Shown here: positions 9,081 to 57,500 of the stretch, in pieces | How positions within the stretch are numbered: the stretch's first letter is position 1 | Layout of the letters: each line of letters begins with the position of its first letter | Assembly (NCBI RefSeq): GCF_001194135.2 | Contig: NC_068993.1 | Coordinates: 28,286,165-28,350,164, forward strand | Length of the DNA stretch: 64,000 bases | Direction: 5' to 3' | Origin: Octopus bimaculoides | Taxonomy: Eukaryota | The notes under the pieces: generated by a model | What the model was told of the DNA's origin: nothing | The model's database searches: none | What the model saw: the letters and a program-made list of their open reading frames with translations, nothing else | Translations under genes and position numbers: made by a program

Positions 9081-9329
9081 TATATATATATATATATATA
9101 TATATACATACATACATACACACATATATATATATAAACATATAAGACTGATACCATGCTGTGTAGTTACCCTACATTCATGTTCCGTCTCCCTACCTCT
9201 CTTCCTGGTCAACCTACGTGCCCTACCTTTATGTCCTCTTTCCTTGTTATCCCTTAACTTGGATGTTGTATGGGATTGGGGAAATTGTAATTCAAATGAA
9301 TTGAATAATGTATAAAAGCTTTATCCCAC

Positions 9330-12300
9330 CTGGCAAGTGTTTGCACAGATCTTTTCAGGTCTCGACAAAATACTCACAATTACTGCCTCTTCCAAGTATA
9401 GAATTTCAGGGCTGCTACCATCAACATTGGCACAATGAAAGGTAGATCTGAGATTATTGAAGTGATGGAGTTTCACCATGTTGATGTGTACAAGAAGTGA
9501 GATGGAAAGAGGCCTCTGCTAGATTGCTCATGGGTAAGAAACAGATTCTACTGGGTAGGCAGGAGTGATGGAGTGGGCATACTGTTAGCAGAAAAGCAGG
9601 TGGATAAGGTAATAGAGGTAATCAGAGTATGTGATAGGGTTATTAATCTAAGACTTATAGATAAATTATGTTTATCTCTGTCTATGCTCCACAGGTTGGG
9701 CTGGCTGATGACCTGAAGAACCAATTCTACAAGGTCCTTCAACAAACTACTTCAATGACAAGTAACAGAGACTTGGTTATTGTGGCTGGTGACTTTAATG
9801 GACATGTCTGGTAGCATTCCCATGGATTCAAGAATGAGTGAGGAACAAGGCTACTGTAGTTCTGTGATGCAAATGATTTCATGGTCTGCAACACTAACTT
9901 CAGAAAACCAGCCAGCTACGTAATCACTTATCAGTTTCGTTGGCACATAAGTCAGATTGATTACCTCCTGACCAGGCAAAATAATAGGCAGATGCTCACA
10001 AATGAAAAGTCTTTCTCAGGTGAAGCATGTACACCCCAACATAGGCTAGTTAGTGACTTCAGAATTAGGGCTAGAAAGACTTGGAAAAATAAACCATACT
10101 GAAAAAGATCATGGAAGCTCAAAGACCCAGCAAATGGACAGAAATCCAAAGACATTCTAATGGAAGCCTGACAACAGAGAGGACGAAGTAGGGACATATA
10201 AATTAGAGGACAATTGGAAGTTCTTGCAGGACATTCGACTGAAGGCTCCAAACCAAATCTGTGGCTGATGCAAAGTCCCAGCTAGACTGCAGATGACATG
10301 GTGATGGACAGCACTATAAAAGCAGAGAAACAGGCCTGGAAAAATGATGGGAGCAGAGAATTATATCAGGTAGCCTGAAGGGAAGCTAGGTGACAGGTTT
10401 ACATAGCAAAAGGAATAGCTGAAGGTAAGAGGCTTGCCAATGTTCTACAGTATGAGGTGTTCAGGATTGCAAAGCAGTGTATCAGAGAGAATAGAGATGT
10501 GGTGGGGGAGAAATGTGTGCAAATGGATAATGGTATGCTTGCACTTAGTGACTCAGAGAAGAAAGATGTGAGGAAGTGCCACTATGAAGAGTTACTAAAT
10601 GTGGAAAATGAATTGAGGGACCAGCCATCAGAGTTGATAGCAGCATAATACTTAAGGCAATTAAGGATATGAAGTCAGGAAAAGCCCCTGAGCCATCAGG
10701 AATCACTGCCAAGATGATAAAAATATTCAGTGGTGTAGGATACAGCCTAGTCACCTGTATAGTTAATCAGGTTATTCAGGAAGGCACCATCTCCACTGAC
10801 TGGTGTATAGTATTACAGTTAACTGCTACAATGGGGAAGGTGATGCCTTAGATAGAAACAACTACAGAGGTATCAAACTATTAGATCAGGTCATGAAAAT
10901 TACAAGAGGGTAATAGCTCAAATGATTAGGAATAAAATTAAACTAGATGAGTTGCAGTTTGGTTTTGTACCTGGGAAGAGTACCACAGATGCCACCTTCC
11001 TAATGAGACAGCTACAGGAAAAGTATTTGGCCAAAAGTAAGCCACTGTACTTAACTTTTGTCAACCTGGAGAAAGCTTTTGACAGAAAATTCCCACTCTG
11101 TTATCTGGTGGTTTCCAAGGAAGTTAGGAGTAGAAGAGTAGCATGTTACAGCTGTACAAGCCATGTACAGTAGTGTTGCCAGTAAAGTGGTGAATTTAGC
11201 GTACAAGTAGAGGTTCACTAAGTTTCAGTTCTTAGCCCACTCTTATTCATTATATTAATAGTCCTTCAGGTCATAACAGCAGAATTCAAAACTGGATGTC
11301 TATCGGAACTACTTTATGCTGATGCCTTCACTCTTATTGCAGAAACTGTAACAGAATTGGAGAAGAGATTCCATGTATGGAAGCAAAACTTGGTATCAAA
11401 GGGCCTTAAAGTTAACCTAACAAAGACCAAAGTTGTTGTTTGCAAGAAAGAAGATAAAATTCTCTTTCCATCAAGTAAACGGCTCTGCTCAATATGTAGG
11501 AAAGGAGTTGGAAGTAATTCTATTTGCTGCACCTAGTGTAAGCTATGGACACATAAGAGGTGCAGTGGAATCACAGATAGATTAACAGATAAAACTGTCT
11601 TCATATGTGGCAGATGTGCATGAACAATAAGCACTAAGAGCACTCGGGACTTAGATTCTAAAATGCCAAGGAGGCTCTCTTGAGAATGTAAATAGTTTCT
11701 GAACCCAGGTAACCAAATTAACAATGGTGGAGGATGCTCTGAAAGTATTGATTCTAGAATAAGAATAGGATGAAGTTCAGAGAGCTATTACCTCTGTTGG
11801 TAACAAAAGGACTTTCTCTCAGAGTGAAAGGTAGACTGTATGATGCTTGCGTGCAAACGGCTATACTCCATGGTAGTGAGACACGGGCTCCGGATGTGGA
11901 AGACATGTAGAGACTGGAGAGAAATGAAGGCAGTATTCTCCGATGGATATGCAACATCAGTGTGCATGTATGGCAGTGCTAATGTATTGAGAGAAAAGTT
12001 GGACATAAGAGGAATCAAATGCAGCATGCAAGAGAAAAGACTATGCTGGTTTGGATGTGATGCATATGAATAAAGGCAGCTGTATAAGTAAGTGGAGGGT
12101 ACTCGTGGAAGGGGGAGACCCAGGAAGACAAGGGATGAAGTGATAAAGACCAATCTCAGAAAGTTGGGCTTCACGGAGGAAATGTCAATAGACTGAGATG
12201 TCTGGCAATGTGAAATTCTGAAGACCCACATATGTCAGGGGAACTGAGTTCTAGAAGAGCTGAGTGCCCCACCCACACGTAACAAGATAACTTTTCACAT

Positions 12301-13080
12301 AACCTACCCCAGCAAACCAAACTACATCTCTTTCATGCACTATGCTTATCTCTCACCCTCCAGTCCTGTCTTCGTGGCCCTGTTCACCATATTATTGCTA
12401 TCCAGTAGCCCCCCGCCCCTCTGTATACCCAGGTTTTCACCCCTCACTGCATTCTTCTCCCCACGCTTCCTTGGCAATGCCTTGCTACTTATGACCTCTG
12501 TACCTCAAAGGTATGCCCTGGCATTTGCCACCATCTATCTCTCTCTTCTTTTACTTGACCATCCCATTTATATTCTGATCCCTGTCCCTTGTGAGAATGT
12601 CTGGCATTTTGCAACCATCTCTCTCCATTACAGCAGTACAAGTTTCTGTCCTCATTCTTATTTCTCTCTGGCTAGGTAACCACGTACTTCCCCACAGCAA
12701 GACACCTGTTTCTGTCTCTCTGTTCCACTATAACCTTTCATCATCTGACACAAGATCACCTCCTCCAATGACCCTGACCCTCTCAAAGGATCTTTGTCTT
12801 GCAAGTTACTTGGTGACCCTGTCAGTGCCAAAGCATCCAGTCCACACTGTAAAGTGGTTGGCATCCAGCTGTAAAAACTGACCCTGCCAGTGCTTGTGTC
12901 ACATAAAAAGCACTCAGTCCACTCTGCTGGGTGGTTGGCGTTAGGAAGGGCATCCAGCTGTAAAAACCCAGCCAAAACAGTTACAGAAGTCTGATGCAGG
13001 CTCTTGCCTAGCCAGCTCCTGTCAAACCGTCCAACCCATGCCAGCATGGAAGGTGGATGTTAAACAATGATGATGATGAT
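9330..13080 (+). mobile_element. Degraded long RTE-clade LINE (APE endonuclease + RT) with 3' tail
   Basis: ISVYAPQVG, VAGDFNGHV, VCNTNFRK, QIDYLL (APE); KSGKAPEPSGI, QFGFVPGKSTTDA, VNLEKAFD, LYADA (RT); (GAT)n tail at ~13065-13080. Confidence 0.9.
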
Positions 13081-17973: not shown

Positions 17974-19275
17974 CAAGAGGGTACCCAAAAGAAATCGGAA
18001 TTTTGCAATATTTTATTCACTTTGTTTTACATGTTTGTACTTCTACTGCCTTCAAAGTATTCTCCATCTGAAGCAATGCATTGGTCCAGATGTGTTTTCC
18101 ATTGTTCAAAGTAGTCCTGGAACTCTTGTGAAGTGATACTTTTAACACCTTTGTCATTTTTTTTCTTTAACTCTTCCACATCTGCAAAACATTTTCCTTT
18201 AAGGACTTTCTTTCATTTGGGGAAACAAAAAAATCACAAGGAGCAAGATCAGGTGAATAGAGAAGGGTCGTGTAATTTTTGGTCAAAAACTGTCTCACAC
18301 TCAAGGTGGTGTGCACAGGCACGTTGTCATGATGAAACCACTGCTCTCCACTTTGCCACAGGTCGGAGTGTTTTTGTATCACTACGTCTTGCAAATGCTT
18401 CAGAACTGCTAAGTAAAATGTCTAATTAACAGTTTGACCAGGAGGAATAAATTCTGTGTGGACAATTCCTTTCGCATCGATGAAACAAGTCAGCATCATC
18501 TTGACATTGGACTTCACTTGATGTGCTTTTTTGGGGCATGGGGACATCAAATGCTTCCATTGACTTCATTGCTGCTTTGTTTCCGGATTGTAGCCATAAT
18601 ACCAGCTTTCATCACCAGTGATGACCTTTGAAAAAGGGTCCGGATCAACTCCTAACTGTTCTTTCAGTTCACGACACACAGTCAGTCATGACTGTTTTGA
18701 TCTTCTGTGAATAAGCAAAGCACAAATTTTGCTGCACCTTTTTTGATTTGCAATTCTTGACTCAAAATTTGTTGGCAGGAGCTCCAGGATACACCAGTCA
18801 TATCAACAAATTCATTAATTGTTCAGCAACGGTCCTCCAAGATCAGTTCATGAATTTTCGTGATGTTTTCATTCGTTCAGGAGCTCAACAGTCGCTCTGA
18901 ATGAGGTTGGTCATCAAGCAACACGTGACCGTTCCTAAAGCATGAAAATCACTCGTAAACTTGCGTTTTGCTCATGGTAGCATCTTTGTAAGCTGTTTGA
19001 GGCATGACAACTGTTTCGGCCACCGTTTTCCCTAGCAGAAAACAGAATTTCATGAAAGCACGCTGTTCCTTCGTTTCAACGATCGCATAAATTGATGAAC
19101 AGGGGAGAAGTACTGCAAAACAAAGATACACCACATGGCAGTTGGACTCTAATCAATGATGCCAGTCAGCAGACTGATGCTGAGGGTTGCATCTGGCTTC
19201 TAGCGGCAGAAGTCTGAACTACAATGGGCTTTGTCCCACAGAGAATGTTTCCAGTTACTTATGGGGACCTCCTCG
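17974..19275 (-). mobile_element. Full-length degraded mariner transposon
   Basis: Imperfect TIRs caagagggtacccaaaag / cttatggggacctcctcg with TA on both sides; EQRAFMKFCFLLGKT, WFHHDNVPVH, YSPDLAPCDFF. Confidence 0.88.
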
Positions 19276-22309: not shown

Positions 22310-22334
22310 TTAATCTTTTCTTGAACGCCGTCTT
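22310..22334 (-). CDS. CANX: Calnexin terminal coding exon (R)RRRSRKD*
   Basis: Long U-rich tract + tgtag acceptor; A|AGA CGG CGT TCA AGA AAA GAT TAA; basic C-terminus like human SPRNRKPRRE. Confidence 0.85.
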
Positions 22335-25300: not shown

Positions 25301-28300
25301 TCTCGTTGAAGCCATGTTATTTGATGTCTACCTCTATGATTAAAAAATAACACAAGTTGGTTGAGCATTTACATTACACTTTGCATGTTCACATTTAGCT
25401 AATTTGATCTTTCCTAATGTCCCATTGAAAGACTCATAAAACTGCCAATAGCAAGAGATGGAAAGAGTCTTTACGCTGATTCTACTTTGTATCTTTGTAA
25501 TCCCGCATGGAGGGCAGATGTTATGGTGAAACCATTTTCAAGATGTTCAAATGTCTTTAGTTGGAGTTTTTTTTTTCCAACTGTGAAAACAAAAGCTCTT
25601 AATGTGCTTGGTTTTCTTCCATATTGAAAGGAAGATGGGATAAATTTATGAATATCAAACAAAAGATTTTAGGGTTTCATTTTTTTGATGTCACCTTAAT
25701 TATCAGGTTTACTAGTCTATTACTGAAAAAGTTTATCAGTTAATTAAAATTTTGGCAATAAATTGGAAAAATTCTGTACTTCTATTTTAAAAGTTTCGAC
25801 TCAAAAACACTTTTTTCTTAAAAAATTATTTCAGGTGGCTGATGTAAATTGCTCAGCCTACTTGAAAATTCATGGGTTTCTACTACCTTTTTGAACTAAA
25901 TTTTGCGATCAGCCAAGATCGTAAATTGATCTTTATTCCAAAAATGAACAATTTCAGTACAGCAAAAACAGTAGCTAACCATGAAAAACTAAGGTCATTT
26001 TCAGAATCAGGACCATCAAATTAACTAAAAAATGTGTTTTGTTTCTTGGCACCAAAAATTATGTTGACCAGTGTTATTAACACATGCACTGATTCAGTTC
26101 CACTCCTTTATTATCAGGTCATCCCATAAGTTCTGTCTGAATTTTGAATAAAGAAAACAAGCGATCAAATGTTATATTTAATTGAAATTTAATCATCAAT
26201 GTACTTTCCCTGATTATCTATGACTTCCTTCCATCTATTTACGAGCTTTTTAATCCCATCAATGTAAAATTCTTTTGGTTTCAAAGCGAAGAACTCTGAA
26301 ATGTCAGTTTCGACCTCCTCCTGGCTTGTGAAAATTATGTCCCCCAAATGATTCTGTAAACTATGAAACAAATGGTAACTTTGTTTCATAAACATTCTAA
26401 AATACTATTAAATTTCATTCAATTTTAAAAAAGGTAAAATCGGACAGAACTTATGGGATGACCTGATATTAGTCAAATGGTTAAATATCCAGCTAACTCG
26501 ATTGATTGTTTAATTTTGTTAAACAATAAGTGATTTGTTTTGTTTGTCAAAGCTCTTTCGTTGCTACTTGCAACTTTGTTGTGTGCGCGTGTGTATGCAT
26601 ACTTCTGCTTCCTTGTGTGTGCATGCTTAAGTGTATCTACGCATGAGTTTGTGTATATGCATGAGTGCCTATATATGTTTTTGTGTGTGTGCATGTCTGT
26701 ACTACCTATATACCTACCTTCCTTCATACATACATACCTTATTTATCTACCTATTAACTTGCCTATCTTCCTACCTATCTAGCTACCTACATAACTGACT
26801 AAGTAACTAACAATCTATATAACTGACCTAACCATGTAAAACCCATCTACTTACCTATCTACCTACCTATTTACCTACTTCACAAATGTACCTATGTGCA
26901 CGTACTGTGTGGATGATATGTGACATTGGTGTATTCCTACCTTCTATGTATATTTCCTATTTAGTATGGGTAATGTTTCATTTACAAGGATGTACTCTTT
27001 TATTTGTCATCAATGGTGTTATGTAAATTGGCACCTGGGACTCATGGTCATTGGCAGTGCCATGTAAATGGCACCTGTGCATCTAGCCACCGTCATTGCC
27101 GGTCCCATGTAAATGGCACCCACCTATGAATCATAATCATGATTGTTGCCAGTGACACATAAAAGCACCCATTACACTCCTGGAGTGGTTGGTGTTATGG
27201 TGTTAGGAAGGACATCCAGCTGTAGAAACCATGTCAAATCGGACTGGAACCTGGTGCAGCTCTCTGGCTCATCAGCTCCAGTCAAACAACCCATGTTGTT
27301 AAATACAGATGTTAAATGATGATGATGATAACCCCATGACTACCAAGGAAACCAAGAGGAGCATGATGGCAAGCATCCAGCATATAGCTAATTCCATCCG
27401 GCAAAGTATCAAGGTAACTATAGATTACCCAACTAGGCACCCTAACAATAGACATTCGATCCTTGATACTGAACTTTGGTTAGAGATAAACAACAGAGTA
27501 CAGCTCCTCCACTATTACATGAAATCCATAGCTTCTAAATATGTTGTTCACAAGAACTCAGCTTTGTCACACGATATGAAAATTAGCATACTAATTTAGA
27601 CTTAGAGTAATGAATAATGTATCCCCCCTATGTGAACCCAGTGAAACAAGGAGACATGTACAGAACTTCATGCACAACATGCAATTATCTGGATATGACC
27701 AGAAAGATAGGATTCGAGTAAGAAATTAGACGACATCATACGTAATGATGCCTGTGTAAAGATTGGAATACACAGAGGATTTGTGACAAAGCAAAGAGAG
27801 TGAACACATGGTACAGGGCTGATAAATATCAAGGAGTGATGTTTGTGGAGGCCACACCTCATGAAGAATTAGCCCGCAGACTTAGGAAAGCTCTGAAGGA
27901 CACCAAACTCAACATTAAGGTCATTGAGAAGCCAAGGAGCTCCATCAGATCACAATTATGTAGGATGTACAGCTTCGAAAATATCACATGCACTAATGAG
28001 AACTGTGTAGTATGAAAGTTTAACTCCAATATTACTTGTAAAACTAAGAATGTAGTCTACAGAATAAGGTGCATGGAAGAAGTTTGTAAGGACAGAAACA
28101 CAGCGGAGCACCAGAGAGAGTATAATGACAAGAAACAGTTGTCCATGCTCTATCAACATGCCAAAGACCAACATGGCAGCACACTGGGCCAAAATGACAT
28201 CCACATTTTGTCCAAACACCCGAAGGCCCTATCACTAAGACAAATACAAGAGTACACCCTCATAAATGAAACATTACTCATACGAAATAAGAAATACACA

Positions 28301-31300: not shown

Positions 31301-34300
31301 TCAAAATCGAACTAAATTTGTAGATTGGCACCCATGCCAACGTCTCTTCATTGAACACTAAACTCAGCTTGTGAAGACCTGTTGGGGCAAGCGAAAGCGA
31401 AATCGTGATGGTACCTGTACCAGTAGATCACTAAGAGCACCGTCCAAGCGGGATCGTTGCCAGAGCACCAGCTGTCTGGCTTCCGTTCCGGTGGCACGTA
31501 AATAGCACCATTTAAGCATGATCGTTACCAACGTCGCCTTCCTGGCACTTGTGCCAGTGGCACATAAATAGCACCATTTAAGCGTGATCGTTACCAACGT
31601 CGCCTTCCTGGCACGTGAAAAGACATTCAAGCAAGATCGTTGCCACTGCCGCTGGACTGGCTCCTGTGCAGGTGGCACGTAAAATACACAATTTCGAGCA
31701 TGGCCATTGCCAGTACCGCTTGACTGGCCTTTATGCCGGTGGCACGTAATAACACCCACTACACTCTCGGAGTGGTTGGCGTTAGGAAGAGCATCCAGCT
31801 GTAGAAACTCTGCCAAATCAGATTGGAGCCTGGTGTAGCCATCTGGTTCACCAGTCCTCAGTCAAATCGTCCAACCCATGCTAGCATGGAAAGCAGACGT
31901 TAAACTACGTTGATGACACAAACTGAGCTGACACAAGTTTTAGTACATTGGCAGCAATTAGACTTATAACTGAAGTCACAGTTTTTTTTGTATGTGAAGG
32001 TGTGTAAAATAGACTGCCACAGCAACATGTGTTCTTGTTGGTTACTAAAATGTGAAAAATACCATGAAGTCATGAATTTTAAAAAGCAAATTTGAAAATA
32101 CAGGTGAGAGCATTAGGGCTGTCATACATAAATTACAAGTTTTTATGGAGCTGGTGCTGAACTCTAGTTCCTAAAGCATTAAAAGGTTAACGAGACAAAA
32201 AAAAAATGTTATTTCTATCAGTTGAGAATTTAAGTTGAACTATCTAAAACATCAGTTAAAGTAATGTAAAACCAAGTGTTTTCTCCAAACAGCCTAATCA
32301 TTCACTTATCTAAAAAATGAAAATAGCTAAATCATTAAGAGAAACCATGAAGTTTACTTAATTATCACTTAAAAATAGGTAAACATTATTTGAATAAGTG
32401 CTGAGAGAATTCTGTAACAGCATTTTCAACTTACTTTTTCAACTTCAAGATCCCCCTTCAAAGGTTTTTTAGGTCTACCATCAACCGGCTCCACTTTTTC
32501 TTCAGAACCTGAAGCATTATCACCTTCTTCTTCTTCTTCTTCTTCTTCTTGACCACCTTCATCTGCAAGTTTATCAGAATTGTCTTTCTTCTTGTCAGAA
32601 TCATCTTTCATCTCCTCAGAATCACCTTTCACCTTGCCAGAATCATCACTAATTTTGTCATCAGGTGATGGTGCATCGGTTTTCTTCCTCTCTGCAGTTT
32701 CATCCTTGAAGCAATGTGAGAATAAATATTAGAAGCAAACTTCTATATATAAACAGTTAAACATTTAATATCAAAAGCTAGAGATGCCCTGCAAAGTAAA
32801 TAGAAGAGAAGCAAGTGGCAACTTAGTCACACCCACATACATATTCAATTATGTCCTTCATACCCATACACAGGTTTTCTTTTTTCTAATACCTATCAAC
32901 AATATTGAACAGAATTTTCTTCTTTGAGATTATAATGTATATGCATATCAAACATCATTTGTTTTAACTGTTCTAATTTATATTTCTTTCAACTCCATTT
33001 AACATCGAAGAAAGTCTTTAAATGTTTAACTTATTTAAACAACAAAACTGAAACCAACTTAATAAATATGACATAACAGAAGCTGATTTTATAGTCTATT
33101 GAATTGGATTAGTTCAGAAATTCTTTCAGGAAATTAATTCTTTATTTATACATTAGACTATTTTGGGTTATTTTTATTAATAGATAAAAATCATTTAACA
33201 TCAAAATTCATGAAAATGATTGTGTTCATTATTTATAAGGATCCTCAACAAAACATTTACAACTCACAGAATTTATGACAGTACCCTAATAATGTTTACA
33301 TACATCTGATATACATTGAAAATAGTCAATATTAGGGAAGTATTTAGTGCAAAGTTTTGTTATAGCATTTCTCTTTCACACAACACTCGCACATATATGT
33401 ACAATATCATTGCTGGTAAAGAGAAACATGAACAGATTACAATGTGCCAGTGATGTGTACATGAAATGTGCTGGGGGAGGGCAAGATTTGAGGATGTAAA
33501 CTATTTTGAAAACTGGGAAAATTTAGTGTTATAGTTTTTCAATGTAACAACCATATTCAGTCAATAACTCAAGCCAATTTATTTTTTGAGACCATAGCTG
33601 ATTTTAATGTGAAATGTCACATTTTACAACAGAATGCTAAGAAACCAAAATAGATACATAACTATGTGCATATCTAATCTGTTTAGTTAATATCAAATCA
33701 CTATAGAGACAGGATTTAAAAAGAAAAAAAATCATGCAGTGCCCACAAGTATAAAGGCAAGTCTCAGATGTGGACTTAGAAAGGTAAAAATTTTATTCTT
33801 ATTTCAGACAACTTGGATTACTAAGAAGTTTTTATAAGAATAGGATGCTATATCTGCATAAAATGAACTTTAAATAAACATGCAAAATTTTGCCTGAAGT
33901 TGCTGTATGTAACACCATGGCTGAAAAGTTCATAAGCTGACTATGAAGGAGTGATGCTAGAGTTGTGAAATCTTGCATGCATTAATTTCAACTTTCCTTA
34001 TTAGTAACTTCATTGTTTCTTTCTTTCCAGGTAAACTGACATCTGATTGTTCAAAGAACACTTCAAAAGTAACTTGTAGCAACTTCTCTTGAAAATGGAC
34101 AAAAATTGGCATCGTGGTGTTGTCAAGTACCTGCAGAAAAAGGCTTTAACTCCCAAGGATTTTCATGTTGACATGGTTGCTACATTAGGGGATGATACTC
34201 CACCTATATCAACAGTGGAAAAGTGGACAGCAGAATTTAGGAGGGGAATGGAGTCTTGATGATGACTCAACATTTGGACATCCTGCAACTGCCACTATCA

Positions 34301-35626: not shown

Positions 35627-35977
35627 AGAATTTAAAAAAAAGCTAAAGACGAAGACAGGTGCTGGAGACAACAAACAGATGTACTAGTATAACGCTTGGG
35701 AAGTGAAAAAGTCTTTCAATGTTTTGAGCCTACGTTCTTCCACAGAAAGAAACTAGTAGAGAAAAAAAAGAATGTGTAGTGGCTAGCGATCTATCATGGT
35801 GATACACATATATATACGTATATACACATACATAACTACATATATGCATACATATATATATACATGCATACATATATATATACATGCATACATACATATA
35901 TACATACATACATATATATATATACATACATATATATATACATACATACATATATATATACATACATACATATATAT

Positions 35978-36008
<31 letters not shown>

Positions 36009-36353
36009 CATACATACATACATACATATACATACACATACATACATACATATACATACANNNNNNNNNNNNNNNNNNNNNNNNNNNNNNNNNNNNNNNN
36101 NNNNNNNNNNNNNNNNNNNNNNNNNNNNNNNNNNNNNNNNNNNNNNNNNNNNNNNNNNNNNNNNNNNNNNNNNNNNNNNNNNNNNNNNNNNNNNNNNNNN
36201 NNNNNNNNNNNNNNNNNNNNNNNNNNNNNNNNNNNNNNNNNNNNNNNNNNNNNNNNNNNNNNNNNNNNNNNNNNNNNNNNNNNNNNNNNNNNNNNNNNNN
36301 NNNNNNNNNNNNNNNNNNNNNNNNNNNNNNNTATATATGTATATACATATATG

Positions 36354-36385
<32 letters not shown>

Positions 36386-39300
36386 CATACATATATATAT
36401 ATATGTATATACATATATGTACATACATATATATACATATATATACATACATATATATATACATACATATATATATACATACATATATATATACATACAT
36501 ATATATATACATACATATATATATATATGTATATATATATAGACATATAAATATATGTATATACATATATATACATACACATACATACATATATATCCAT
36601 ATCTATATAGCTGAGTTTGTGAGTGTGTTGCATCTATAGAAATCCACGCCTTACAAGATAGCAATCTGGGAGTCGCACCGATGGATTCCTCATGGTTGAA
36701 AATGCCCGGAATCGGCTATTTGTCTTTTTTTTTCGTTGCTTCCTAACACGTGAAATTTTGCATTAAAAATAATTTTAAACCATAAATTCTAACAAGTTTC
36801 AAGTCGCCATTATTTGCAAACATGAGTTCAGTCCCCTTCTAGCGACGGTGCAAAGACAGAGAGCAACAGAGATAACAGATATGTTAACTTTAACTTTATT
36901 TCTATTTTAATATAAACCTTTAAATGAGTTGGGTGTTTTTTCTCAAGTATCTAATGAATTATTTGATATAGTGGTGTTGTTTTCATCTACCTACTTTACA
37001 TCATAATAGTTACTTAATTTTTAATTTATATGTATATGTGAGATAGTAACGATTACATCGTAATATTTGTTTACTTTTCACTTTATTGATTAAATCCGTT
37101 CTTTCTTTTGATATTATTTTTAATATTGTATCTGAACCCCATTACTAAGTTAATTTATTATAATTTTTCTTAAACTTTGATAGCTGCAATCTGAATGTAA
37201 CCTAATTTATTTCACTTATTATCTATAGTTTATATTCTCTAATTTATCTTGTATATAATAAACGTGAAGTTGTGGATCTGTGTGAAGTCTTTTTAAAAGT
37301 TTATAGAAATCCACATTTTCCACTTTTTCGTAAATTTTTTTACATCAATGAAATTTTCTCGATGTGGACTTTCCAATGCAGTAATTAGATTTTTTAAAAT
37401 TCCGTTTACTTTGTGATTTAAGGGAGGTTTGGCTGTTATTTCTAGCAACTTTTATATTTCTTCCCTTCTACCTGTAACAGCGTTCTTATACACATATATC
37501 ACGCGCTCAACATAAAATATAGAATAAGAGTGAGAGAGAGAGAGAGAGAGAGAAAGAGAAAGTGATACATACAAAGTCTTCTTTCTTTTTCCTCTCTCCC
37601 ATTTAATAGTTTTCTTGTATCCCTCTACCTCTAACATATTTTTCATAACATAGAAGCGTAAAAACACACACACAACCACACATACGTGATCTGTGACAAC
37701 AACATACACATAAACATTATAGATATAAGATTTCTGCCCAATCTGATAGAATTCTGGCAAAACTGTGTAGCAACAGATCGCCAGCAATTGCTTCATCACA
37801 AATTGCCATCCTAGTTCCTGCTAAAAGGGATTACCCTGCTATGTATAATCAGGGCAGCGCAAAAAGTTGTTTTGCACAAGCATTTCTATAGCCAATTAGA
37901 CGGATGAAATTTACGTATGCTTAATAATGTTACGCAAAACAGCCTTCAGACTTTCCCTATTAATTTCACTGTCTTTTGAATTATGAACATATTTACATCA
38001 TAAGGGTTTATTCGTTGTAAGGCTTCCTTTTTTAGTTGATTTTCACCTAGCAAGACTTATCGTAGATGGCGTAATAAGTCACACCCGGACAACGTCAGGT
38101 TATGCTGCTAGTATATATATAAAGGTTGGCATCAGATCTGCTGTATTGTTTATGCCATTGAATGCATTCTTGTTTACTCCTATCTGTCTCAAACATTATT
38201 CCCTATCTCTATCACTGTGAATGTCATACAACACCTGCATTAATGTCTCCCTATCACTTTCCCCTACCACCCTGCTTGCACCATGATACTTATAATCTTG
38301 CTTCTTTCACCCTCTTGATTTTCATGCTTTTCCTATTCACATTCTTGGTCAATGTTTGCATTGAATTTTAAGTCAAGAGTACTTTTTAGTCTTGCAGGGA
38401 ACAAAGTAACCTCTGTAGTATTAGTATCATAATAAGTATACTCTGAATTGTATAGAAAGGGCATCCAATAACAGAAACTATGCCATAATGGAATATACAA
38501 ACCAAGACAAATTCTTCACACTTATCTAAGGAGGACTGGCTTGATAAGCACTGAAAATAGCATGTACATGGTGTTATATGTCAGCTGGTAATTTAAGTTT
38601 AACCACAAACTCAGCTCAAGATAGAGTTCACTACCAGTTTGTAGTACTTGTATACAATGTGTTATATATCACAACTAGAGCATTAGTAGTCACAAGCTTC
38701 TGACAGGCCAACCACTGCTCACTCTATTTCTGAAAGAATAAGTAGTTAAGGAGTATCTATAAACTTGATGTTGAACAAATATTTGAAAGGGCTTCATTTG
38801 TAAAGCACCAGTTTCTCCAACCAGTATAGAAAGACACACATAATGATAGTTTCTCAGCACTGACAAGATATTAATCAACCTGCAGCTATAGTAGAAGACA
38901 TCTGCCCTAAGTTGCCATGAAGTTGGATCAGTTGCAAAATTCTTAACATTGCAGCCATACCTGTGCACAAAAACAATATAATCACTACATCTAAAAGTGG
39001 GGTACTTAAACTGCAGGTTTTGAATGAACAAATATATCAAAGAGAGGCAAGTGGGAGAAAAAGCAATGTGAAAGCTATACTTGAGCAACTACTGCAACTA
39101 GTATAGAAAATACTGGACAATGCAGCCACAACACATAAACTACCTCTTGATTCCCTCCTTTAGAGATAATGTAGAGAGACAGTAGTATGATAGGAATGAT
39201 AATAATCATTCCATATGTAACAATTAACCAGGGATTGTCTTCAGCAGCAAATGAAAGTTTATTCATCAACATCATGAAATAGCTACTTTCCTGTATACAG

Positions 39301-42300
39301 AAAACAAAACCAAATCTTTTTTTTAAAATGCGACAAAACATGAATCATTGAAACAATGATAAGTAGAATGCTGAAAGGGAAATATCTTGCCATTGGGAAG
39401 GGGAGGAGTTAGTCACAAATATTTAAGCAATGTCCAGAAATGGGTTCAGTATCCAGACATATTCTCCAAGAGCAGTTAGTTACATTGCACAGAAAAACGG
39501 GGGCTTTAAACAGAGCCACACTTTTTTCATGTACACACAAAGGCTTTAGTATTTTAGAAGATAAAGAAAAAACTGGATATGCAGCTGCATGCAATGCAAA
39601 CCAGCTATTTTCAAAGGGAAAGCTTACCTTTGCTGAGCTGCCTACACAGCAATAGGCAATAACAAGTACAATAGGAAGCAAAACAACAACAATGAATACG
39701 GCCCATAGCCAAGGCCGTTCATTAGTCACATCAAGAACAGCTTGCACTACACTTTTCTGAAACAGAGAAGCATTTAATTGAAGAAAGTTGACATAAATTA
39801 GAGAATTAAAAAGTAATACTCCATAACCCATTGAGTTCTTGGGGAACCACTGAATATAATTTTTCATTATTTGGACAGTGATTCAAGGTTGTGGTTTTAA
39901 CAGGGTCACAAGGAAGGTTTGATTATTTTAACCTTCTCAAAATCCATGGAAAAATATTAGCTTAATACTTCAAGCTAACCAAACACATCTGATACACACA
40001 GCTCACATGATTTAAAGCAGTAAATTAAACCTGCACATGATACCTATATACAATTGAATGGTCTTGACATTTTATAATTGTATAAACACTGCACATCATT
40101 GTCAGGGTATGAGCTGATGAACCTTCTGCTGGCAGGTCAAAGCCCAACTAACATGCCATTCAATTGCAATATTAAAATCAAAAACAATACAGTAATATTT
40201 TTCGTCTTATTTTATAGCTAAATGTAATAAATTACAGCTACTGATTAGCCATAAAAAACCTTGAGAATATTGTTACTGCATCAATATATATATATATAGA
40301 ATGCTGAAAGGGAAATATCTTGACATTGGGAAGGGGAGGAGTTAGTCACAAATATTTAAGCAATGTCCAGAAATGGGTTCAGTATCCAGACATATTCTCC
40401 AAGAGCAGTTAGTTATATTGCACAGAAAAGGGGGGGGGGCTTTAAACAGAGCCACACTTTTATTCACTGCACTATATATATATATATAGTGCAGTTAAGT
40501 AAACTGTCGTCTAAATTACATGAAAATGAAAACAACAATGACATCACATTTTAACAGATATATTTACCAAAGTTGCATAAAAATATATTCAAATACTAAA
40601 GAGTAAATTTATTCAATAAAATCCTCATTGGTTTCAATCATGGCCTCCAGACGACTTCGGAATCTCCCGCAACTCTTCTGGATGGTCTCCTTGTTTAAGT
40701 TGATGAATGCTGCCATAATCCTTGCTTTCAGTTCATCTTTGGTGTTACAAAGAGTTTTGTTGGTCTCTTGCTCAACTGCGCCTCACACATAAAAATCAAG
40801 GGAGTTGCAGTGTGGGGAGTTAGGTGGTCAGATGTTAAGGGTGATATGGTCACAGAAATTATCTGAAAACCATGACTGGGTTCTCCTGCTTATGTGACAT
40901 GATGCAGAGTCCTGCTGCCAAACAGAGGGTCTTCCAGCAGCCACCCTCTTGACCCAGGGTAGCACTACTTCTTCCAGGCACTTGATGTAAGCCTCCATGT
41001 TGAGACTGAGGCCGTGTGGGAAGACGAATGGAGGCATAACGTCACCATCACTAGAGACCACCCCAAACACCATGATGTTGACTGGATGTTTGATTTTCAT
41101 CACACTTGGTCCTCAGATTGACTCCCAAATACTTTGAAATGTTTGTATTGGACCTTCTGGCACAAATGCCAAGCAGTACAGTATGTCGTTACCAAATTTT
41201 GGGCAGAATGAATTGTGTCATGGTGCTATTTTTCTCACAGATGGTGTCCAACTGACCCTACTATACTGTGTAGTCAACAAAATCAAAAACAAACAATGCA
41301 CATGCGTGAAATTAAAAATATAAAATGGCGATGATTTACCCAGTGCACCCTTATATATCATAGCTTTGTATCACTTGTCATTATTTACAGGAACATAAGC
41401 AATTGATAATCATAAATATTGATAAGAGCTGATAAATAAATAGATGTTAAAACTATTCTTTTATTTGTTTCAGTCATTTGACTGTGACCATGCTGGAGCA
41501 CCACCTTTAGTCAAACAAATTGCCCCCAGGACTTATTCTTTGTAAGCCTAGTACTTATTCTATTAATCTCTTTTGCTGAACTGCTAAGTTATGAGGATGT
41601 AAACACATCAACATTGGTTGTCAAGCAATGGTGGTGGGGGGACAAACACATGACGGGCTTCTTTCAGTTTCCATCTACCAAATCTACTCACAAGCTTTGG
41701 TCAGCCTGAGGCTATAGTATAAGACACTAGCCCAAGGTACCATGCAGTGGGACTAAGGTGATGATGAAATCACAAAAATGCCTGATCCTTAGAGCACAGG
41801 ATTAATAGGTTCCATTTTTAAGCTAAAAAGAGAAACTTTCATTTTGAGCTATATTGCCTCACTTATTCCTTGAAGACAAACTCATTTAATTAAGTTTTTC
41901 AGGTATTTAACTCAAAGGATGAGCTCAAAACAAAGCTAGCAATTGCCATATGTGCCAGACTCTTCAGTAGCATTGTCCTACTTGTGCTCTAATATGATAT
42001 TGAGACAACGAAGACAATAGAACATCAATTGGCAATGATGCAAAGGGCCATGGAAAGATCTATGTTAGGAATATCATTAAGAGAGCACATTCAAAATGAG
42101 ATACTTCAAGAATGGAGTGAGTGAATCATGTGATCACAGAGTACCAAAAGCACAAGTTCTGCTGGGCCATACATGTCACAAGGTTGAGAGACTACAGGTG
42201 GACCTGTGCAGTTGCTGAGTAATAGCCGAAAGATCACAAAAGGTCACTTGGAAGGTCTTCACAACAATAGGAAGACGATTTGGTTAAGCAATTGGGGTTT

Positions 42301-45136
42301 GGAAGTGCACTGTGACCAGTGGAGTATAACAACATCTGAAGGCCTGGTCGATACTGTGATACTATGAGTCAGAAAAAACTATAAAACATCATTAAACACA
42401 TTTCATTAAGAATACTTTTTGATAATGGCACAAGGCCACAACAGTGCTGAGGAAGAAATTGTCCCCAGATATATAAATGAAGTCAAGCCAAGTAATTTCA
42501 AAAGAGAAAACTACACTCTCTGAGTGGTTGGCGTTAGGAAGGGCATCCAGCTGTAGAAACTCTGCCAAATCAGACTGGAGCCTGGTGTTGCCATCCGGTT
42601 TCACCAGTCCTCAGTCAAATCGTCCAACCCATGCTAGCATGGAAAGCGGACGTTAAACGATGATGATGATGATGATGATGATGAAAACGAAAGACTAACG
42701 ACAAAATATATACTTTTAGACATTCAGTCTATTTCTGCCATTCCACTGTGCTTAATTACTATTACTACTTGTAGTAAGTTCTAACTTTGGAACAAACCCA
42801 CAAATTTAGAGGTAAGAGCATGTCAACTTAAATCTACTCAATGTCAACACAGACACTATNNNNNNNNNNNNNNNNNNNNNNNNNNNNNNNNNNNNNNNNN
42901 NNNNNNNNNNNNNNNNNNNNNNNNNNNNNNNNNNNNNNNNNNNNNNNNNNNNNNNNNNNNNNNNNNNNNNNNNNNNNNNNNNNNNNNNNNNNNNNNNNNN
43001 NNNNNNNNNNNNNNNNNNNNNNNNNNNNNNNNNNNNNNNNNNNNNNNNNNNNNNNNNNNNNNNNNNNNNNNNNNNNNNNNNNNNNNNNNNNNNNNNNNNN
43101 NNNNNNNNNNNNNNNNNNNNNNNNNNNNNNNNNNNNNNNNNNNNNNNNNNNNNNNNNNNNNNNNNNNNNNNNNNNNNNNNNNNNNNNNNNNNNNNNNNNN
43201 NNNNNNNNNNNNNNNNNNNNNNNNNNNNNNNNNNNNNNNNNNNNNNNNNNNNNNNNNNNNNNNNNNNNNNNNNNNNNNNNNNNNNNNNNNNNNNNNNNNN
43301 NNNNNNNNNNNNNNNNNNNNNNNNNNNNNNNNNNNNNNNNNNNNNNNNNNNNNNNNNNNNNNNNNNNNNNNNNNNNNNATCTACTTTTAAAAACTATCTC
43401 TCTCTTGTCTTCTTTTATTGATTTATATTCTTTTCAAAAGTTTTCTGATTTAATATTTGTATTGCTTCAACTATAGTTGGCATCAGCAATATGTGAGGAT
43501 GATTTTAAATATTGTAAACAATTTCAAAATAAAATCATTCAGTCTTGTATTTTTTTTGTTTGTTTCAGTCATTTGACTGCGGCCATACTGGAGCACCACC
43601 TTTAGTTGAACAAATCGACCTCTGGACTTAGCCTAGTACTTATTTTATCGGTCTCTTTTGCCAAACCACTAAGTTACAGGGACATAAACACACCAACATT
43701 GGTTGTCAAGTGAAGACAGTGGGACAAACAAACACAAATATATATATATATATATTAAAAGCGATGGGCTTCCTTCAGTTTCCATCTACCAAATTCACTC
43801 ACAAGGCTTTGGTCAGCCTGAGGCTATAGTAGAATAGTAGAAAACATTTGTACAAGGTGCCACACAGTAGGACTGAACCCAGAACCACGTAGTTGGGAAG
43901 CAAGCTTCTTACCACACAGCCACTCCCTAAGCCTAATAATAATTATTGATGTAGTGTGCAAGAGAGACGTCTGTGTTGGTATGGTCATGTGATGTGTATG
44001 GATGAGGACAGCTGTGTAAAGAGGAGTCGATCTCTAACTGTAGAGGGAACCTGTGGAAGGGGTAGACCCAAGAAGTAATGGGATGAGGTGATGAAGCATG
44101 ATCTTCGAACATTGGGTCTCACAGAAGCAATGACAAGTGACTGAGACCTTTGTGATTGGCCATGCTTGAGAAGCACCAACAAGCCAAGTGAATTCATAGT
44201 CATGGCCAATGCCAGTGGCACATAAAAAGCACCCTTTGAACATTGGACCCCATGGAGACAATGATAAGTGCTGACACTTTTGGCGATATGCCATGCATGA
44301 GATGACTCGGCAAGCCAAGTGAAATCATAGTCAAAGCTGTTTATTTGGAGGCTTTGTTTTAAACTAATTTAAAACAAGTTCTCTCATTGGTTGAAAAAAT
44401 TTCAACCGAAATCATCCTAGGTTTTAGCCAGAATTATTCTAAAAGATATTTCAGAACGCTTCTAGAAACTTCCATGGAAAGTTATAAAAGCCTGAATTTT
44501 TTCCGATTTTAGTTAGTGGATAGTGTGGCTTCTGGAAGCTGTTACTCGCTCTCACATACACTTCTTGTAGTTTAACATTCCTGCTATGATACAAGACGTT
44601 GCTTTCCTCCATAATGACCTTTGCTTTCTTTAGTTTAGTTTCAATGAAATAGATAGGTAATTTAATTCTTGTTATGTCTTTGTGGTAGATAAACTCTTAG
44701 AGAAAAATTTTAAATTTCCTACTATACGTATGTTTTCTCACGTCTTTCTTTATTGACGAAGGGAGAGATTACTCTCATGTATTTATATTTAATTGTAATT
44801 AAACTTAGTAAAATAAACGAGAACCAAATGAAAATATCTTTGAAATTGAGCTTTCACAGAAATTTATTTGATGATTCTTGTCATTTTACCAACAGGAAGT
44901 GATAAAAGAAATTAGGTCAACTTCAATATATTATATCTGGGGAGGAGTGGCTGTGTGGTAAGTAGCTTGCTTACCAACCACATGGTTCCGGATTCAGTCG
45001 CACTGCGTGGCATCTTGGGCAAGTGTATTCTACTATAGCCTCGGGCTGACCAAAGCCTTGTGAGTGGATTTGGTACACGGAAACTGAAAGAAGCTCGTTG
45101 TATATATGTGTATATAATATATATATATATATATAT

Positions 45137-45168
<32 letters not shown>

Positions 45169-48100
45169 TTGTCCCCCCAACATCGCTTGACAACCGATGG
45201 CGTGTTTACATCCCCGTAATTTAGCAGTTCGGCAAAAGAGACCGATAGAATAAGTACTAGGCTTCCAAAGAATAAGTCCTGGGGTCGATTTGCTCAACTA
45301 AAGGCGGTGCTCCAGCATGGCCACAGTCAAAAAGACTGAAACAAGTAAAAGAGTAAAGAGTAAATACATCATCAACCACAGAATATATATGAAGACAACA
45401 AAATAAGAACCCGAAAATACAACAGCACATAAAAAGCAAGCACCCATTACATTCTTGGAGTGGTTGGCATTAGGAAGGGCGTCCAGCTGTAGAAACTATG
45501 CCTAATCAGATTGGAACCTGGTGTAGCTCTACAGCTTACCAGTTTCAATCAAACTGTCTCTAACCCATGCCAGTATGGAAAGCAGATACTAAATGATGAT
45601 GTAAAACGTTGCCTTAATATAACATTGGAATGACACATATTAAAGAGGAAAGTAGAGTCAATTAAAATAATCTCAGTACTTGTCTGGAATGTAATTTTAT
45701 CTAGTCCAGAAGGATGAGAGGCAAAGTTGATTTCAGTGTAGGATTTGAGAACCACTGCCTTGTCACAAATTTAGTTTTGGATGAAATAACAGAAACATTT
45801 AAAGTAGCTGTAGATGAAAACAGATTTTTATCAGTAAGAAGGCTTATTCAACTTACACCAGAAATGGAAGATTTTTCCTGAGCTTGTTTTAGTGCAAACG
45901 TATCTTCAGTCCATTTCGTAGTTGTTGCAAGGTTGTCTGTTATAAGAATGTTATCAAACATGATAGATTCAGTCATAGACCATAACTCTAATCCAACAGC
46001 ACCCTGGAAAAGAAATTTTCAAATTTAAGTAAAAGCATAATGAATCTCCATCAAATTTTTCTTCATTTTCATTTTTTTTTTTTTGGTAAATAGGATATCA
46101 ATTTTTGAAGTAAATTTTGCATTTCCAGTGAGTACATAGAGCAGTGGTTTTCTATCATTCAACTCTGTGCATTAAAAACTTTGTTCATTTCTCTTGCATT
46201 TATTTTTCCATGCTTGCATGGGTTTGATCAGTATATACTACTAAAGTATTGTTTTATAATTAGATCCCCTTCCTGGCATTAAACTGGCCTGTTTTTCAAG
46301 AGATTTTTAAAAAATTTCTTATGTCTTCTAGTTTGTTGACAGAGAACTGTCAACAAAGTTCCCCATTTGTGCTCAGCACTATTTATATGCGAATGCAGAA
46401 TGTAATCATTCGCACACATGGAAATCACTGTCTACCTAATTTACTCACAAAACATTGTTAGGCTAGGACCTAGAGTAGAAGAAATTTCCCCACAAAACTA
46501 TGTTGCTGAGGAAGCAAGCTTCCTAACTGCTATATAAGCATCTTGTGTTTTCAAAGACATTAATATGAATTTTCTAAATTCCTAGATTATATATTATTTT
46601 TAATCCAGGCATACTTACAGTACTTTGCAGCATACCATTTAAGAACCACTGATGCAGAAAGAAGGGGTGGGTTAATTTTTATTTTTTTAACTTTTGAACA
46701 AAATTAAATAATCCACTTACAATTGGTATCATTTGATAAGGATTCAAGTCTTCAAAATAATCAGGATTAGGAATCATTCTTGGTTTCCATATACCCTAGA
46801 GAGAGAGAAAGGTATATATATATATATAAAACACATATTTATGCCCATATATACATTTATGTATGTGTGATGATGATATATCAACAGAGGTACTCAGTGA
46901 TGCTCAAGTATCAAATGAACATGAGGGTGTGATTTGAGGAAGAATTAACTACTAAAGATCTTGCTTGTTGGTTTATGCATACATAAGATAGTAGAGTGTG
47001 ATTTGAGGAAAATTTGGATAACATCTATTAACTGCCCAAAGACTAAAAGTTTTAATTAGCAGGAATGAAAACAGGATTCTTTTGCCAATGGAAAAGTGAC
47101 TATGTTCAATATGCAGAGATAAAGTAGAAATTCTTTACGGTGTACACAGTGTAAATTAAGTGCACACAAGAGCTGTAGTAGAAGCACAAGCAGGCTGACA
47201 GAAAAGGTAGATTTTGTATAAGGCAGATGTATAAGAGTTAGTAATAAACTACAAGTCAAATAGATTCTTTCAAATGCTTAGAAAACTACCTAGAAGTAGT
47301 TGATAACATTTGTTATGCGTGTGAATAAATCAGTAGTGAAAAGGGAAGTAGGGTTGAGAAAGCACAGAAGCCAGTATCAGAACAAGGTAGAAAAAATTCA
47401 TTAAAATCTATTGCTTCTGTTCTCAACAAAAGCTTTTTCAGAGTAAAGTGCAAATTATATGATACTTGTGTATGAACTGGGATGCTGCATGGTAACAAGA
47501 TGTGAGCCTTGAATGAAGAAGATATGGAAAGGCAAGAAAGTGATGATGTAAGAATGCTAAGGTGGATCTGTAACGCTAGTAAACATACAGTAGAGCACAA
47601 ATGAACAGAGAGAAAAATTGGATACAAGAGGGATCAAGATAGTGCTGATAAGGTTATGTGACATGTAGGGAGAACACAGGCTATATACAGGAGCAAGTGA
47701 TCCAAGTAAATGGAATTTGTAGAAAGGAAACCTGCAGAAAACCTAATATGTAGCAAAAACTGATCTCAAGAAGCAGAATTCATGAAGAGATAAATGCTGT
47801 ACTAGAGAAGTCTTGCCCACTAGTATGACCATCTAAAATAACAACAGTGATGAAGGCTGGGATATTCAATATATTTATAATTGTTTCTTTCTCTGTCCAT
47901 TGGCTCCTAGCACTATCTCTTTCTCTCATCCTGCCACTTGTGAAATGACAATTGCAACATACTGGATTTCTCTCAATTCAATATCGCTTCCAATACCCCA
48001 GTCACTATTGCATAATTATTTTCTTTTTTCTCTTTACACTTTCTTCTCATTGTTACCTAATCCATCATGAAGCAGTCTATCACTATTTTCCATTAATTTC

Positions 48101-54500: not shown

Positions 54501-57500
54501 TTTTTCATACATACATCACCAAAAAGGGAACCTGATTCTTCTTTATCAAAACATTATTGCTATCATAACTGCTAAAAATGGTGATTCATATGACTGAAAT
54601 GTTCTAAACTGTTACAGTCAGCCTGGACTATTAATAACCAGTTATCTATACTTCATATAAAATCACGAACTGTCTAGTCAAGTGAAATTTATAATTATTC
54701 TATACCTATACCAATATGCAACCACCAGCAATATATGGTGGCTAGTTTCAAACTGAAAGTTACAGAAGTAGTCAAGAGTTCGAAACACTATGCTACTGCT
54801 AGAACATTCGGCATTACTGAGAAGATGATACAAGAGTGGAGAAAGAATGAAGTAAAATTAAGACAAATGCTCAAACAAAAATGTGCAATAAAAGGAAGCA
54901 CTCGATGGCTGAAGCTGGAAAATGATGTAGCAGAATGGGTACTCTAGAGACAAGATAGCTACATTGTAACACGAAATAATTCATCGTCCAGCTGAGAAAA
55001 AGAATCAGTTTCCATTGTCTCATATTGGAAATATGGATGAAACTCCATTAAAATCTGACATGCTGAGTAACAAACCAGTAGATTTGAAATGAGTAAAAAC
55101 AGTGCATGTTAAAAGCACAGGATATGAGAAAACGAGGTGTGTGTGCATGTCCCACCGAGGAGATGACTGAACCAATATGAGATTCTTAAGACTCATACAC
55201 CTCAGCAAAACTGAGTTTTGGAAGAGCTGTGTATTCCACCCACATGTAACATTAAATTTTTCACACACTACTCCAATGAATCAAACTACACTGCATCTTC
55301 TTCATGCACTATGCTTATCTCTCCCTCCCTATTCCTGCAGCCCAATCTTATCCTCTCTGCCCAGCCAACTGTATCATTGCTATTTAATTGTCTCCTCTCT
55401 CTATACACCCAGGTTCTACCAGTCACAACAACATCCCTTGCATTCACATGAACTTCCTACTCATATACCCTGGGCAATACTTTACCATCCCTTTTATAGT
55501 CATATCCTCATACCTTGAGTATGCCCTAGCATACTGCCATAATTTCTCCCCCTCTCTCTCTCCCTCTGACAGGAGTAACTATGTATCCCCTCTATGCAAG
55601 ACACCTGTTTCTGTCTCTTGGTCATATTCTAAGCTCTCATCACCCAGCACAAAGCCACTTTCTTCAATACCATACCCCACTCAAACAATCTTTGTCTTGC
55701 AAGTTACTTGGTGATCTCACTGGGGTTGGTGCCATGTAAAAAGCATCCAGTTCACTCTGTAAAGTGGTTGGTGTTAGGAAGGGAATCCAGCAATAAAATC
55801 TATGCCAAAACAGAGAGTAGAGCTTGGTGCAATCCACTGGCTTGCCAGCTCCTGTTAAACTGTCCAACCCATGCTAGCATGGAAGATGTTAAACAATATT
55901 ATATATATATATATACATACACACACACATCTATATACATATATATGTATTAGGTTGTCAAGAAAGTTCTTGCAGTTTTTAACCTTTAAATTCAGATGCA
56001 CATATCTTTGGCTCAAACAAAACTTTATTAATCGAAATAAACACCATCAGAATCAACGCACTTTTGCCAACGCGAAACAAGTTTATTTATGCCAGTAGCG
56101 TAAAAATCATGCGCTCTGGTGGCGATGAAGTCGCTGAAGGTGTGTTTGGCATTGTCTTTGTTTCTGAAGCATTTCTCACGCAGGAAGTTGTCAAGATGCT
56201 TGAAAAAGTGGTAATCGGTAGGCAAGAGGTCTGGTGAGTATGGCAGATGAGGCAGTTTCATAGCCCAATTCTTTCAACCTCTGCAGAGTCAGTTGTGTGA
56301 CGTGCGGCCGAGTGTTGACGTGGAGAAGAATTGGTCCTTTTCTATTGACCAATGCTGGCTGTTCTTGTCGGAGTTTCTTATGCATTTCACCCATTTGCTG
56401 ACAGTACTTCTCCACTGTAATGGTTTCGCCTGGATTCAAAAAGCTGTGATGGATGAGACTGGCCACAGACCACCAAACAGTCACCATGACCTTCTTTTGG
56501 TGCAACTTTGGCTTCGGGAAGTGCCGTGGAGCTTCGTCGGTGTCCAACCACTGAGCTGAGCGTTGCCAGTTGTCATAAAGAATCCACTTTTCATCGCAAG
56601 TCACAATCTGGTCGAGAAACAGGTTGTTCTTGTTGCGTAAAAGAGAAGACAACACTTTTTGTTGTTCAATTCATGTGGCACCCATTTCTCAAGTATTTTT
56701 GTTTTTCCAATCTCTTTCAAGTGGTTGGAAATTGTCGTATATGTTAAGTCTAATACAGAAGCAAGCTCCTGAACAGTTGTGCGTGGATTGGCTTTGACTA
56801 AGGCTCTTAGTTTATTGTTGTCAACATCCGATGGCTGACCACTATGCTTATCATCTTCATGACTCTCATCACCGCTATGAAATTTCTTGAACCACTATTG
56901 TGCTGTACATTCATTAGTGGTTCCTGGGCCAAACACATCGTTGATATCGTGAGCTGTTTCAGTAGCTTTTCAGCCTAGCTTGAACGGAAATAAGAAAATT
57001 GTGCGAATTTGCTTTTTGTCCATGTTGTATTCAACATTCCGGAAAAAATGGCCTAATTATTCAAAAAGGAAATGAATAACACGATTAGATAGAGTGAAAA
57101 ATGAGCTTTAAAATTATATATGAAGTCAAAGTGATTTAATGAAAATTAATTTGAAAACTCATCATTTAAAACCAAAATTAAAAATTCCTTAAGAACTTTC
57201 TTGACAACCTAATATATATGTATAAAAGACACCAACCAAACCCTAAACCTCTTCAACTCATTCTCTTTTCCATCTGGAGAATCCAAAGCCTTTTTCACCA
57301 AGGCCACCAAATCACTGTACACTGTCATCCTCCATAACAACAGTCTACTAGCCTTAAAACATTTCTTCGTCTGTCTCCTCTACCTAGCTGAACTCATCGA
57401 AACACTTAATTGCTTTTTTCTGGAGAATTTTATGAATAGGTTAGCAGTGCTGTTATAGGAACTAGGACGGACCCCAATTATACCAACCTCTTTGTAAGCC

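Follow-up and report, generated by a model that had tools for sequence, protein, structure and literature searches.

Vertebrates have a single exon for the membrane anchor of calnexin; there, diversification came through gene duplication (calmegin) and acylation is regulated enzymatically. Vertebrate calnexin is acylated on two juxtamembrane cysteines, which gives it a longer half-life and favours its presence in the ribosome-translocon complex and at contacts between the endoplasmic reticulum (ER) and mitochondria (PMC9913998). Here, we analyzed a stretch of 64,000 nucleotides (nt) of Octopus bimaculoides DNA (NC_068993.1, positions 28,286,165 to 28,350,164), referred to below as the window, which holds a large part of a calnexin gene with two adjacent exons, A and B, each predicted to encode a version of the membrane anchor. 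The gene product resembles vertebrate CANX (Cys502/Cys503) and calmegin in its lumenal domain, its one helix with a central proline, its acidic tail and its basic end, and exon A carries the same Cys-Cys pair at the cytosolic end of the helix as CANX. Unlike in vertebrates, the anchor in the window would be diversified by splicing, with one version lacking the acylation site.

The closest described arrangements are mutually exclusive exons that arose by tandem duplication, such as the transmembrane-segment pairs of voltage-gated calcium and sodium channels and exons 2 and 3 of alpha-tropomyosin. As in those systems, the two exons in the window are adjacent and homologous, have a similar length and the same phase and encode the same structural element, with conservation of the flanking intron and a low level of synonymous change. 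The locus differs from them in that the window shows no classical enforcing mechanism, in that exclusivity is something we infer here, and in that what is swapped is the only membrane anchor that an ER chaperone has. Our explanation is that the pair derives from an ancient tandem duplication of a single exon, encoding the lumenal juxtamembrane segment, the transmembrane helix and the first cytosolic residues, and that the pre-mRNA would use either A or B, yielding two calnexins that differ only in their membrane anchor. We give this explanation as a whole a probability of roughly 0.75.

Two anchor exons in one calnexin gene

The gene is a calnexin, with a calreticulin-family lumenal domain, a membrane helix, an acidic tail and a basic C-terminus. 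A Pfam-type domain search with the concatenated window exons returned the calreticulin family (PF00262, E = 1.8e-50), and the window exons match a bivalve calnexin mRNA in tblastn searches; the N-terminal exons lie beyond the window edge. The exons within the window are listed below in the order of transcription, with a slash marking each splice boundary.

45857-46003, minus strand: constitutive lumenal exon upstream of the A/B pair, within the PF00262 match and matching the bivalve calnexin mRNA by tblastn; acceptor cag/, donor /gtaagt; ends ...KSSISG
39628-39756, minus strand: exon A, membrane-anchor exon, 129 nt, 43 residues, phase 0-0; acceptor ...ctctgtttcag/, donor AAG/gtaagc (strong)
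39291-39627, minus strand: intron between A and B, 337 nt
39144-39290, minus strand: exon B, predicted alternative membrane-anchor exon, 147 nt, 49 residues, phase 0-0; acceptor ...ttggttttgttttctgtatacag/, donor GAG/gtagtt (weak)
32435-32704, minus strand: first cytosolic tail exon, 90 codons, acidic, without cysteine; starts caag/GATGAA, ends ...DLEVEK
22310-22334, minus strand: probable last coding segment, with a calnexin-type basic C-terminus ending ..RRRSRKD-stop; putative acceptor

The tail exon contains a KKTD..PDD motif common to the calnexin tails of other animals, and the bivalve calnexin mRNA ends in ..SPRKRKSRKD, comparable to the end of the last segment in the window. Exons A and B are each preceded by a pyrimidine tract and an AG acceptor. 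All four junctions around them (upstream exon, A, B and tail) are in phase 0, and therefore either exon fits between 45857 and 32704, as the first-pass annotation of this DNA had proposed; the donor of the lumenal exon at 45857 would serve either A or B, and the tail exon at 32704 would act as acceptor for either. The other sequence features described in that annotation (the exon coordinates, the 337-nt gap, the phases and splice sites, the lack of cysteine in B, the AAE..PWL motif and the hydrophobic stretch) were every one reproduced.

The translation of exon B has the AAE..PWL motif, then about 21 hydrophobic residues with a proline in the middle, and then a polar end; the maximum Kyte-Doolittle value over 19 residues is 2.49, as compared to 3.21 for exon A. 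At the cytosolic end of its helix, exon A has a juxtamembrane Cys-Cys pair (..AYCCVG..), and exon B contains no cysteine at all. The two exons find each other in reciprocal tblastn searches within the window (E = 0.002-0.003), with 30% identity over 23 residues, and a tblastn search across the 64 kb for a third anchor-like exon returned only A and B. An A(A/T)EERPWLW motif is also borne by vertebrate and nematode anchors.

Conservation and age of exon B

A protein search with exon B led to one open reading frame (ORF), P0001, which occurs in Logan contigs assembled from three sequencing runs. These contigs, of about 2 kb, are unspliced DNA of a close relative, the one close relative compared here, and align to positions 40013-38314 of the window. 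Exon B is identical to its counterpart at 144 of 147 positions (98.0%) with acceptor and donor kept, and exon A at 127 of 129, with both differences synonymous; there are 0 gap columns in either exon. Pooled over the three segments, the introns show 85.8% identity across 1376 aligned bases and contain 73 gap columns, and the intron between A and B is 89.1% identical with 17 gap columns. At the intron rate, three mismatches or fewer in exon B would be expected with P = 4e-7, and divergence jumps straight after the exon B donor, where 31 of 40 positions are identical (77.5%). Nonsynonymous differences in exon B occur at a proportion (pN) of 0.026, as compared to 0.142 for the introns (P = 2e-5), and there are no differences at about 30 synonymous sites (pS = 0; P = 0.01). 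The comparison shows exon B to be under purifying selection, synonymous sites included, and supports it as a genuine coding exon that is kept by selection and is a homologue of the exon for the calnexin membrane anchor. The first-pass annotation had suspected purifying selection from the intact frame and had suggested computing dN/dS against other cephalopod and mollusc genomes; its suspicion is borne out by the high identity relative to the introns, the absence of indels and the retained splice sites. Alternative exons under regulation are reported to show less synonymous change.

The three differences in exon B are all nonsynonymous, albeit conservative (N>S, F>L and I>V). Together with the weak GTAGTT donor, the strong divergence from exon A and the lack of a transcript from the window species, they are what could be said for exon B being a pseudo-exon left over from an old duplication, intact in appearance but not used. 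We consider this quite unlikely, given that the level of conservation seen in the relative stops at the splice sites, which are themselves preserved, and that the orthologous exon B is spliced into a bivalve mRNA (see below).

Conservation extends into two blocks of the surrounding introns:

39060-39121, minus strand: conserved intronic block 3' of exon B, 25-85 nt past its donor; sliding identity 92-95%, against 83% for the intron overall
39757-39860, minus strand: conserved intronic block of about 100 nt upstream of exon A; identity 92-95%, against 83-89% in the surrounding intron

The first of these is a possible splicing regulatory element, and both blocks may serve as such elements flanking the alternative exons. 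These neighbouring blocks and the full conservation of synonymous sites would also fit a non-coding element, for instance a splicing regulator inside the intron or an RNA gene, in which the reading frame is open by chance. We regard this as highly improbable, as the translation is a recognisable calnexin anchor that matches bivalve B exons, and the conserved stretch is bounded exactly by AG and GT in the correct phase.

More distant loci were reached by using the C-terminal portion of the protein, and aligned B-type sequences, as queries. In Tegillarca granosa (contig L007), exon A (11573-11698) is followed after 863 nt by exon B (12562-12693; KGILTTLKTAAEQYPWLWAVYVVVILLPVLLLAICLCPRNGPTR), both in phase 0-0 and between the same flanking exons. 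The same layout, again 0-0, was found in another bivalve contig (L011; A at 707-832, B at 1330-1464) and in Argopecten irradians (L013; A at 9239-9364, B at 9894-10025), and a Mya arenaria protein model (P0008) carries A followed by B. A search for exon B in other molluscs, which the first-pass annotation had put forward, thereby recovered pairs in several bivalves. The B exons of several bivalves are near-identical around ..ICLCPRSGPIK and retain two cysteines (..ICLCPR..). Exon B of the window scores 80 and 86 against bivalve B exons (tblastn E of about 1e-7) and 54-65 against any A exon. With moderate confidence, we therefore take it to be the orthologue of bivalve B, based on its position, phase, AAE..PWL motif and these scores; the similarity itself is modest, and it is position, phase and motif on which the orthology rests. 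For exon A of the window, identity to its counterparts in Lamellibrachia and Tegillarca is 71-79%.

In the annelid Lamellibrachia satsuma (L008), a B-like open exon in phase 0-0 (12343-12441; VWDFLMTHCWTISMVVVVLVVLLVAYAIWHQKQ/gtaacg) lies 21 nt (12322-12342) past the exon A donor. This cysteine-poor exon recurs in conserved form in a contig from a second annelid (P0016), where the spacing is about 63 nt, and it has no cysteine on the cytosolic side. Its orthology to mollusc B is uncertain. At the level of genomic sequence, these loci show the A/B pair to be an old arrangement, common to at least three bivalve genomes and the Mya model, with a B-like form in two annelids. The deep divergence of B from A that the first-pass annotation had pointed out is indeed there, but it reflects an ancient exon duplication rather than a local novelty.

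Two further observations were made along the way. A very compact animal genome (Logan SRR23372228; L004, 10001-10369) has a single B-type anchor, which is 70% identical to Mya B and continuous with the preceding exon, with no intron in between; an exon of the A type was not found there. In practical terms, tandem anchor exons mislead gene predictors: Mya model P0008 has both anchors in series, and Tegillarca model P0014 leaves exon B (L007 12562-12693) by a cryptic site after ..PWLWA.

Probable use of the pair, its possible control and the rest of the window

A bivalve RNA contig from Logan (L009), which represents a calnexin mRNA with its 3' untranslated region, aligns to L011 as the upstream exon (122-269), exon B (1330-1464) and the tail from 2288 onward, and contains none of the 20-mers of exon A. 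Joins of B to the tail were also found in P0063 and in Argopecten model P0059, while forms spliced with A only are given by the lophotrochozoan transcripts P0003 and P0004 and by Lamellibrachia model P0002; no one species among these shows both forms. L009 provides direct evidence that B is a used alternative exon in the orthologous bivalve gene. In the window species, exon B would most likely be used as an alternative to A as well. The first-pass annotation had proposed that A and B are mutually exclusive: their alternative use is supported by the bivalve mRNA with B and without A, and their exclusivity in this species is what we infer from the sequence.

Exon A donors are of the GTAAG type, and B donors are weak in the window (GTAGTT) as well as in the bivalves (GTACTG, GTGCTT and GTACTG). 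Rbfox proteins promote inclusion of an exon from a downstream site and skipping from an upstream site. One site of this type stands out near the exon A donor:

39588-39593, minus strand: UGCAUG, Rbfox-type motif, 36 nt past the exon A donor; identical in the related species

The same motif is found past the A donor at +55 in Tegillarca and at +39 in bivalve L011; shuffling puts the chance of such a placement at about 0.01 for each lineage, and the observed density of 0.5 per kb puts it at about 0.03. GCAUG also occurs 23-39 nt upstream of B in all three bivalves, and is absent there in the window. In this respect the locus is like Rbfox-regulated exons, including exclusive pairs in C. elegans, in which (U)GCAUG lies within about 60 nt past one exon at a position kept across very distant species (PMC4165533). 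Unlike with those exons, the resemblance here lies in the motif only, and the motif is missing at the equivalent place past the A donor in the scallop Argopecten. We consider the UGCAUG at 39588-39593 a candidate regulator of the choice between A and B; by extrapolation, the choice might favour A in Rbfox-rich tissues. Exon A, with its strong GTAAG donor, would then be the default or Rbfox-enhanced exon because of the conserved UGCAUG at +36, and exon B, with its weak donor and conserved flanking intron blocks, would be the regulated one.

Several points weigh against our explanation, in addition to the three substitutions in exon B, its modest similarity to bivalve B and the missing motif in Argopecten. 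A word-indexed search with B plus its junction flanks for a transcript of the window species returned only the unspliced genomic ORF of the relative, and an exhaustive HMMER search using exon B as query hit nothing but that ORF, the Mya model and some spurious repeat proteins. Neither the window species nor its close relative yielded any RNA in the searches. Since the exon A form of the window species is missing from the transcript collections too, this absence of B transcripts is uninformative. For the control of the choice by RNA pairing, inverted repeats, duplex folding and ungapped helices in the window were not meaningfully above shuffled controls. The best single helix (39590-39580 with 39130-39120), considered as a docking or looping structure, was rejected, being broken in the related species. 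Finally, A and B are multiples of three and lie 337 nt apart, so that neither steric hindrance nor reading frame and nonsense-mediated decay enforce exclusivity, and the window sequence itself permits double inclusion or double skipping. The bivalve pairs, too, are widely spaced and keep the frame in every combination.

The two exons might accordingly not be exclusive, with B as a cassette exon following A, giving a calnexin with two helices, or with both exons skipped, giving a soluble form. Every combination is in frame, an intron of this length can be spliced, no enforcing mechanism was found and Mya model P0008 has both exons. This model, however, is partial and automatic, and at the same point the Tegillarca model shows obvious mis-splicing. 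Bivalve mRNA L009 includes B and not A, and in a protein with two helices the tail, together with its retrieval motif, would end up on the lumenal side. In Lamellibrachia, the A donor and the B acceptor are 21 nt apart, which is too short for splicing, and A and B therefore cannot be joined, which is classical steric exclusivity of the tropomyosin type. On balance, we consider non-exclusive use of A and B unlikely, and one-or-other use remains our reading of the locus.

Elsewhere in the window, a dispersed repeat of about 150 nt was found at 42522-42675, 31769-31916, 8505-8644, 45455-45601 and 27206-27287. It is 74-76% identical to the start of the relative's contig (L001 113-268), the short contigs end in it, and it is probably an element resembling a short interspersed nuclear element. 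Broken ORFs at 56031-56894, 18020-18608 and 26192-26404 (all minus strand) resemble remnants of Tc1/mariner transposases by eye. A Pfam search with two ORFs from 56031-56894 and one from 18020-18608 gave a transposase-type match for the first only (HTH_Tnp_Tc3_2, E = 4e-4, below the curated cut-off), making the Tc1/mariner assignment a weak one. The window contains 1967 N in several runs (for example 42837-43380, 4760-5500 and 35800-36200), mostly beside TG/TA-rich simple repeats; one run lies inside the intron that precedes exon A and may hide a small element.

Possible function of the proposed anchor switch

The predicted A isoform has cysteines for S-palmitoylation at the cytosolic end of its helix, and the predicted B isoform does not. 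As neither exon B nor the first tail exon contains a cysteine, the B isoform would not be S-acylatable at the juxtamembrane site. By analogy with vertebrate Cys-to-Ala mutants, it would be expected to have a shorter half-life and to be less enriched both at the ribosome-translocon and where the ER meets mitochondria; these consequences of cysteine loss are extrapolated from vertebrate work, which also counts against our explanation. The first-pass annotation had described the switch as one that removes the palmitoylation cysteines. This holds for the cysteine-free exon B of the window, but cysteine removal cannot have been what the switch originally served, since a pair of cysteines is retained in the B exons of bivalves. 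For the same reason, the ancestral role was probably a change in the helix and in the specificity for juxtamembrane partners. The lack of cysteine in B is a derived trait of the lineage of the window species, and of the annelid B-like exon.

More tentatively, and with more doubt than confidence, the locus could be one case of a lophotrochozoan calnexin anchor switch that dates from at least the common ancestor of molluscs and annelids and is set by tissue-specific factors such as Rbfox. In the window species, the switch would turn juxtamembrane S-acylation on or off, and would thereby direct the chaperone to translocon and mitochondrial contacts or to the bulk ER.

Our literature searches returned no description of alternative calnexin anchor exons, and neither splicing nor isoforms come up in a 2023 review on calnexin (PMC9913998). 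Automatic annotation already holds a model with exon B, the Argopecten 'calnexin-like isoform X1'. The A/B anchor switch thus appears to be latent in databases and, as far as we searched, undescribed, and would be a further instance of tandem-duplicated alternative exons. To our knowledge, studies of vertebrate calnexin take its membrane anchor as a constant and look at acylation of the anchor as an enzymatic switch. Alternative anchors kept as a conserved pair would, if true, show that some animals vary the calnexin anchor itself. The cysteine-free exon B, if used, would be a natural counterpart of the Cys-to-Ala mutants made in the laboratory, and two native isoforms would make the role of the anchor and its acylation in targeting calnexin to ER subdomains testable.

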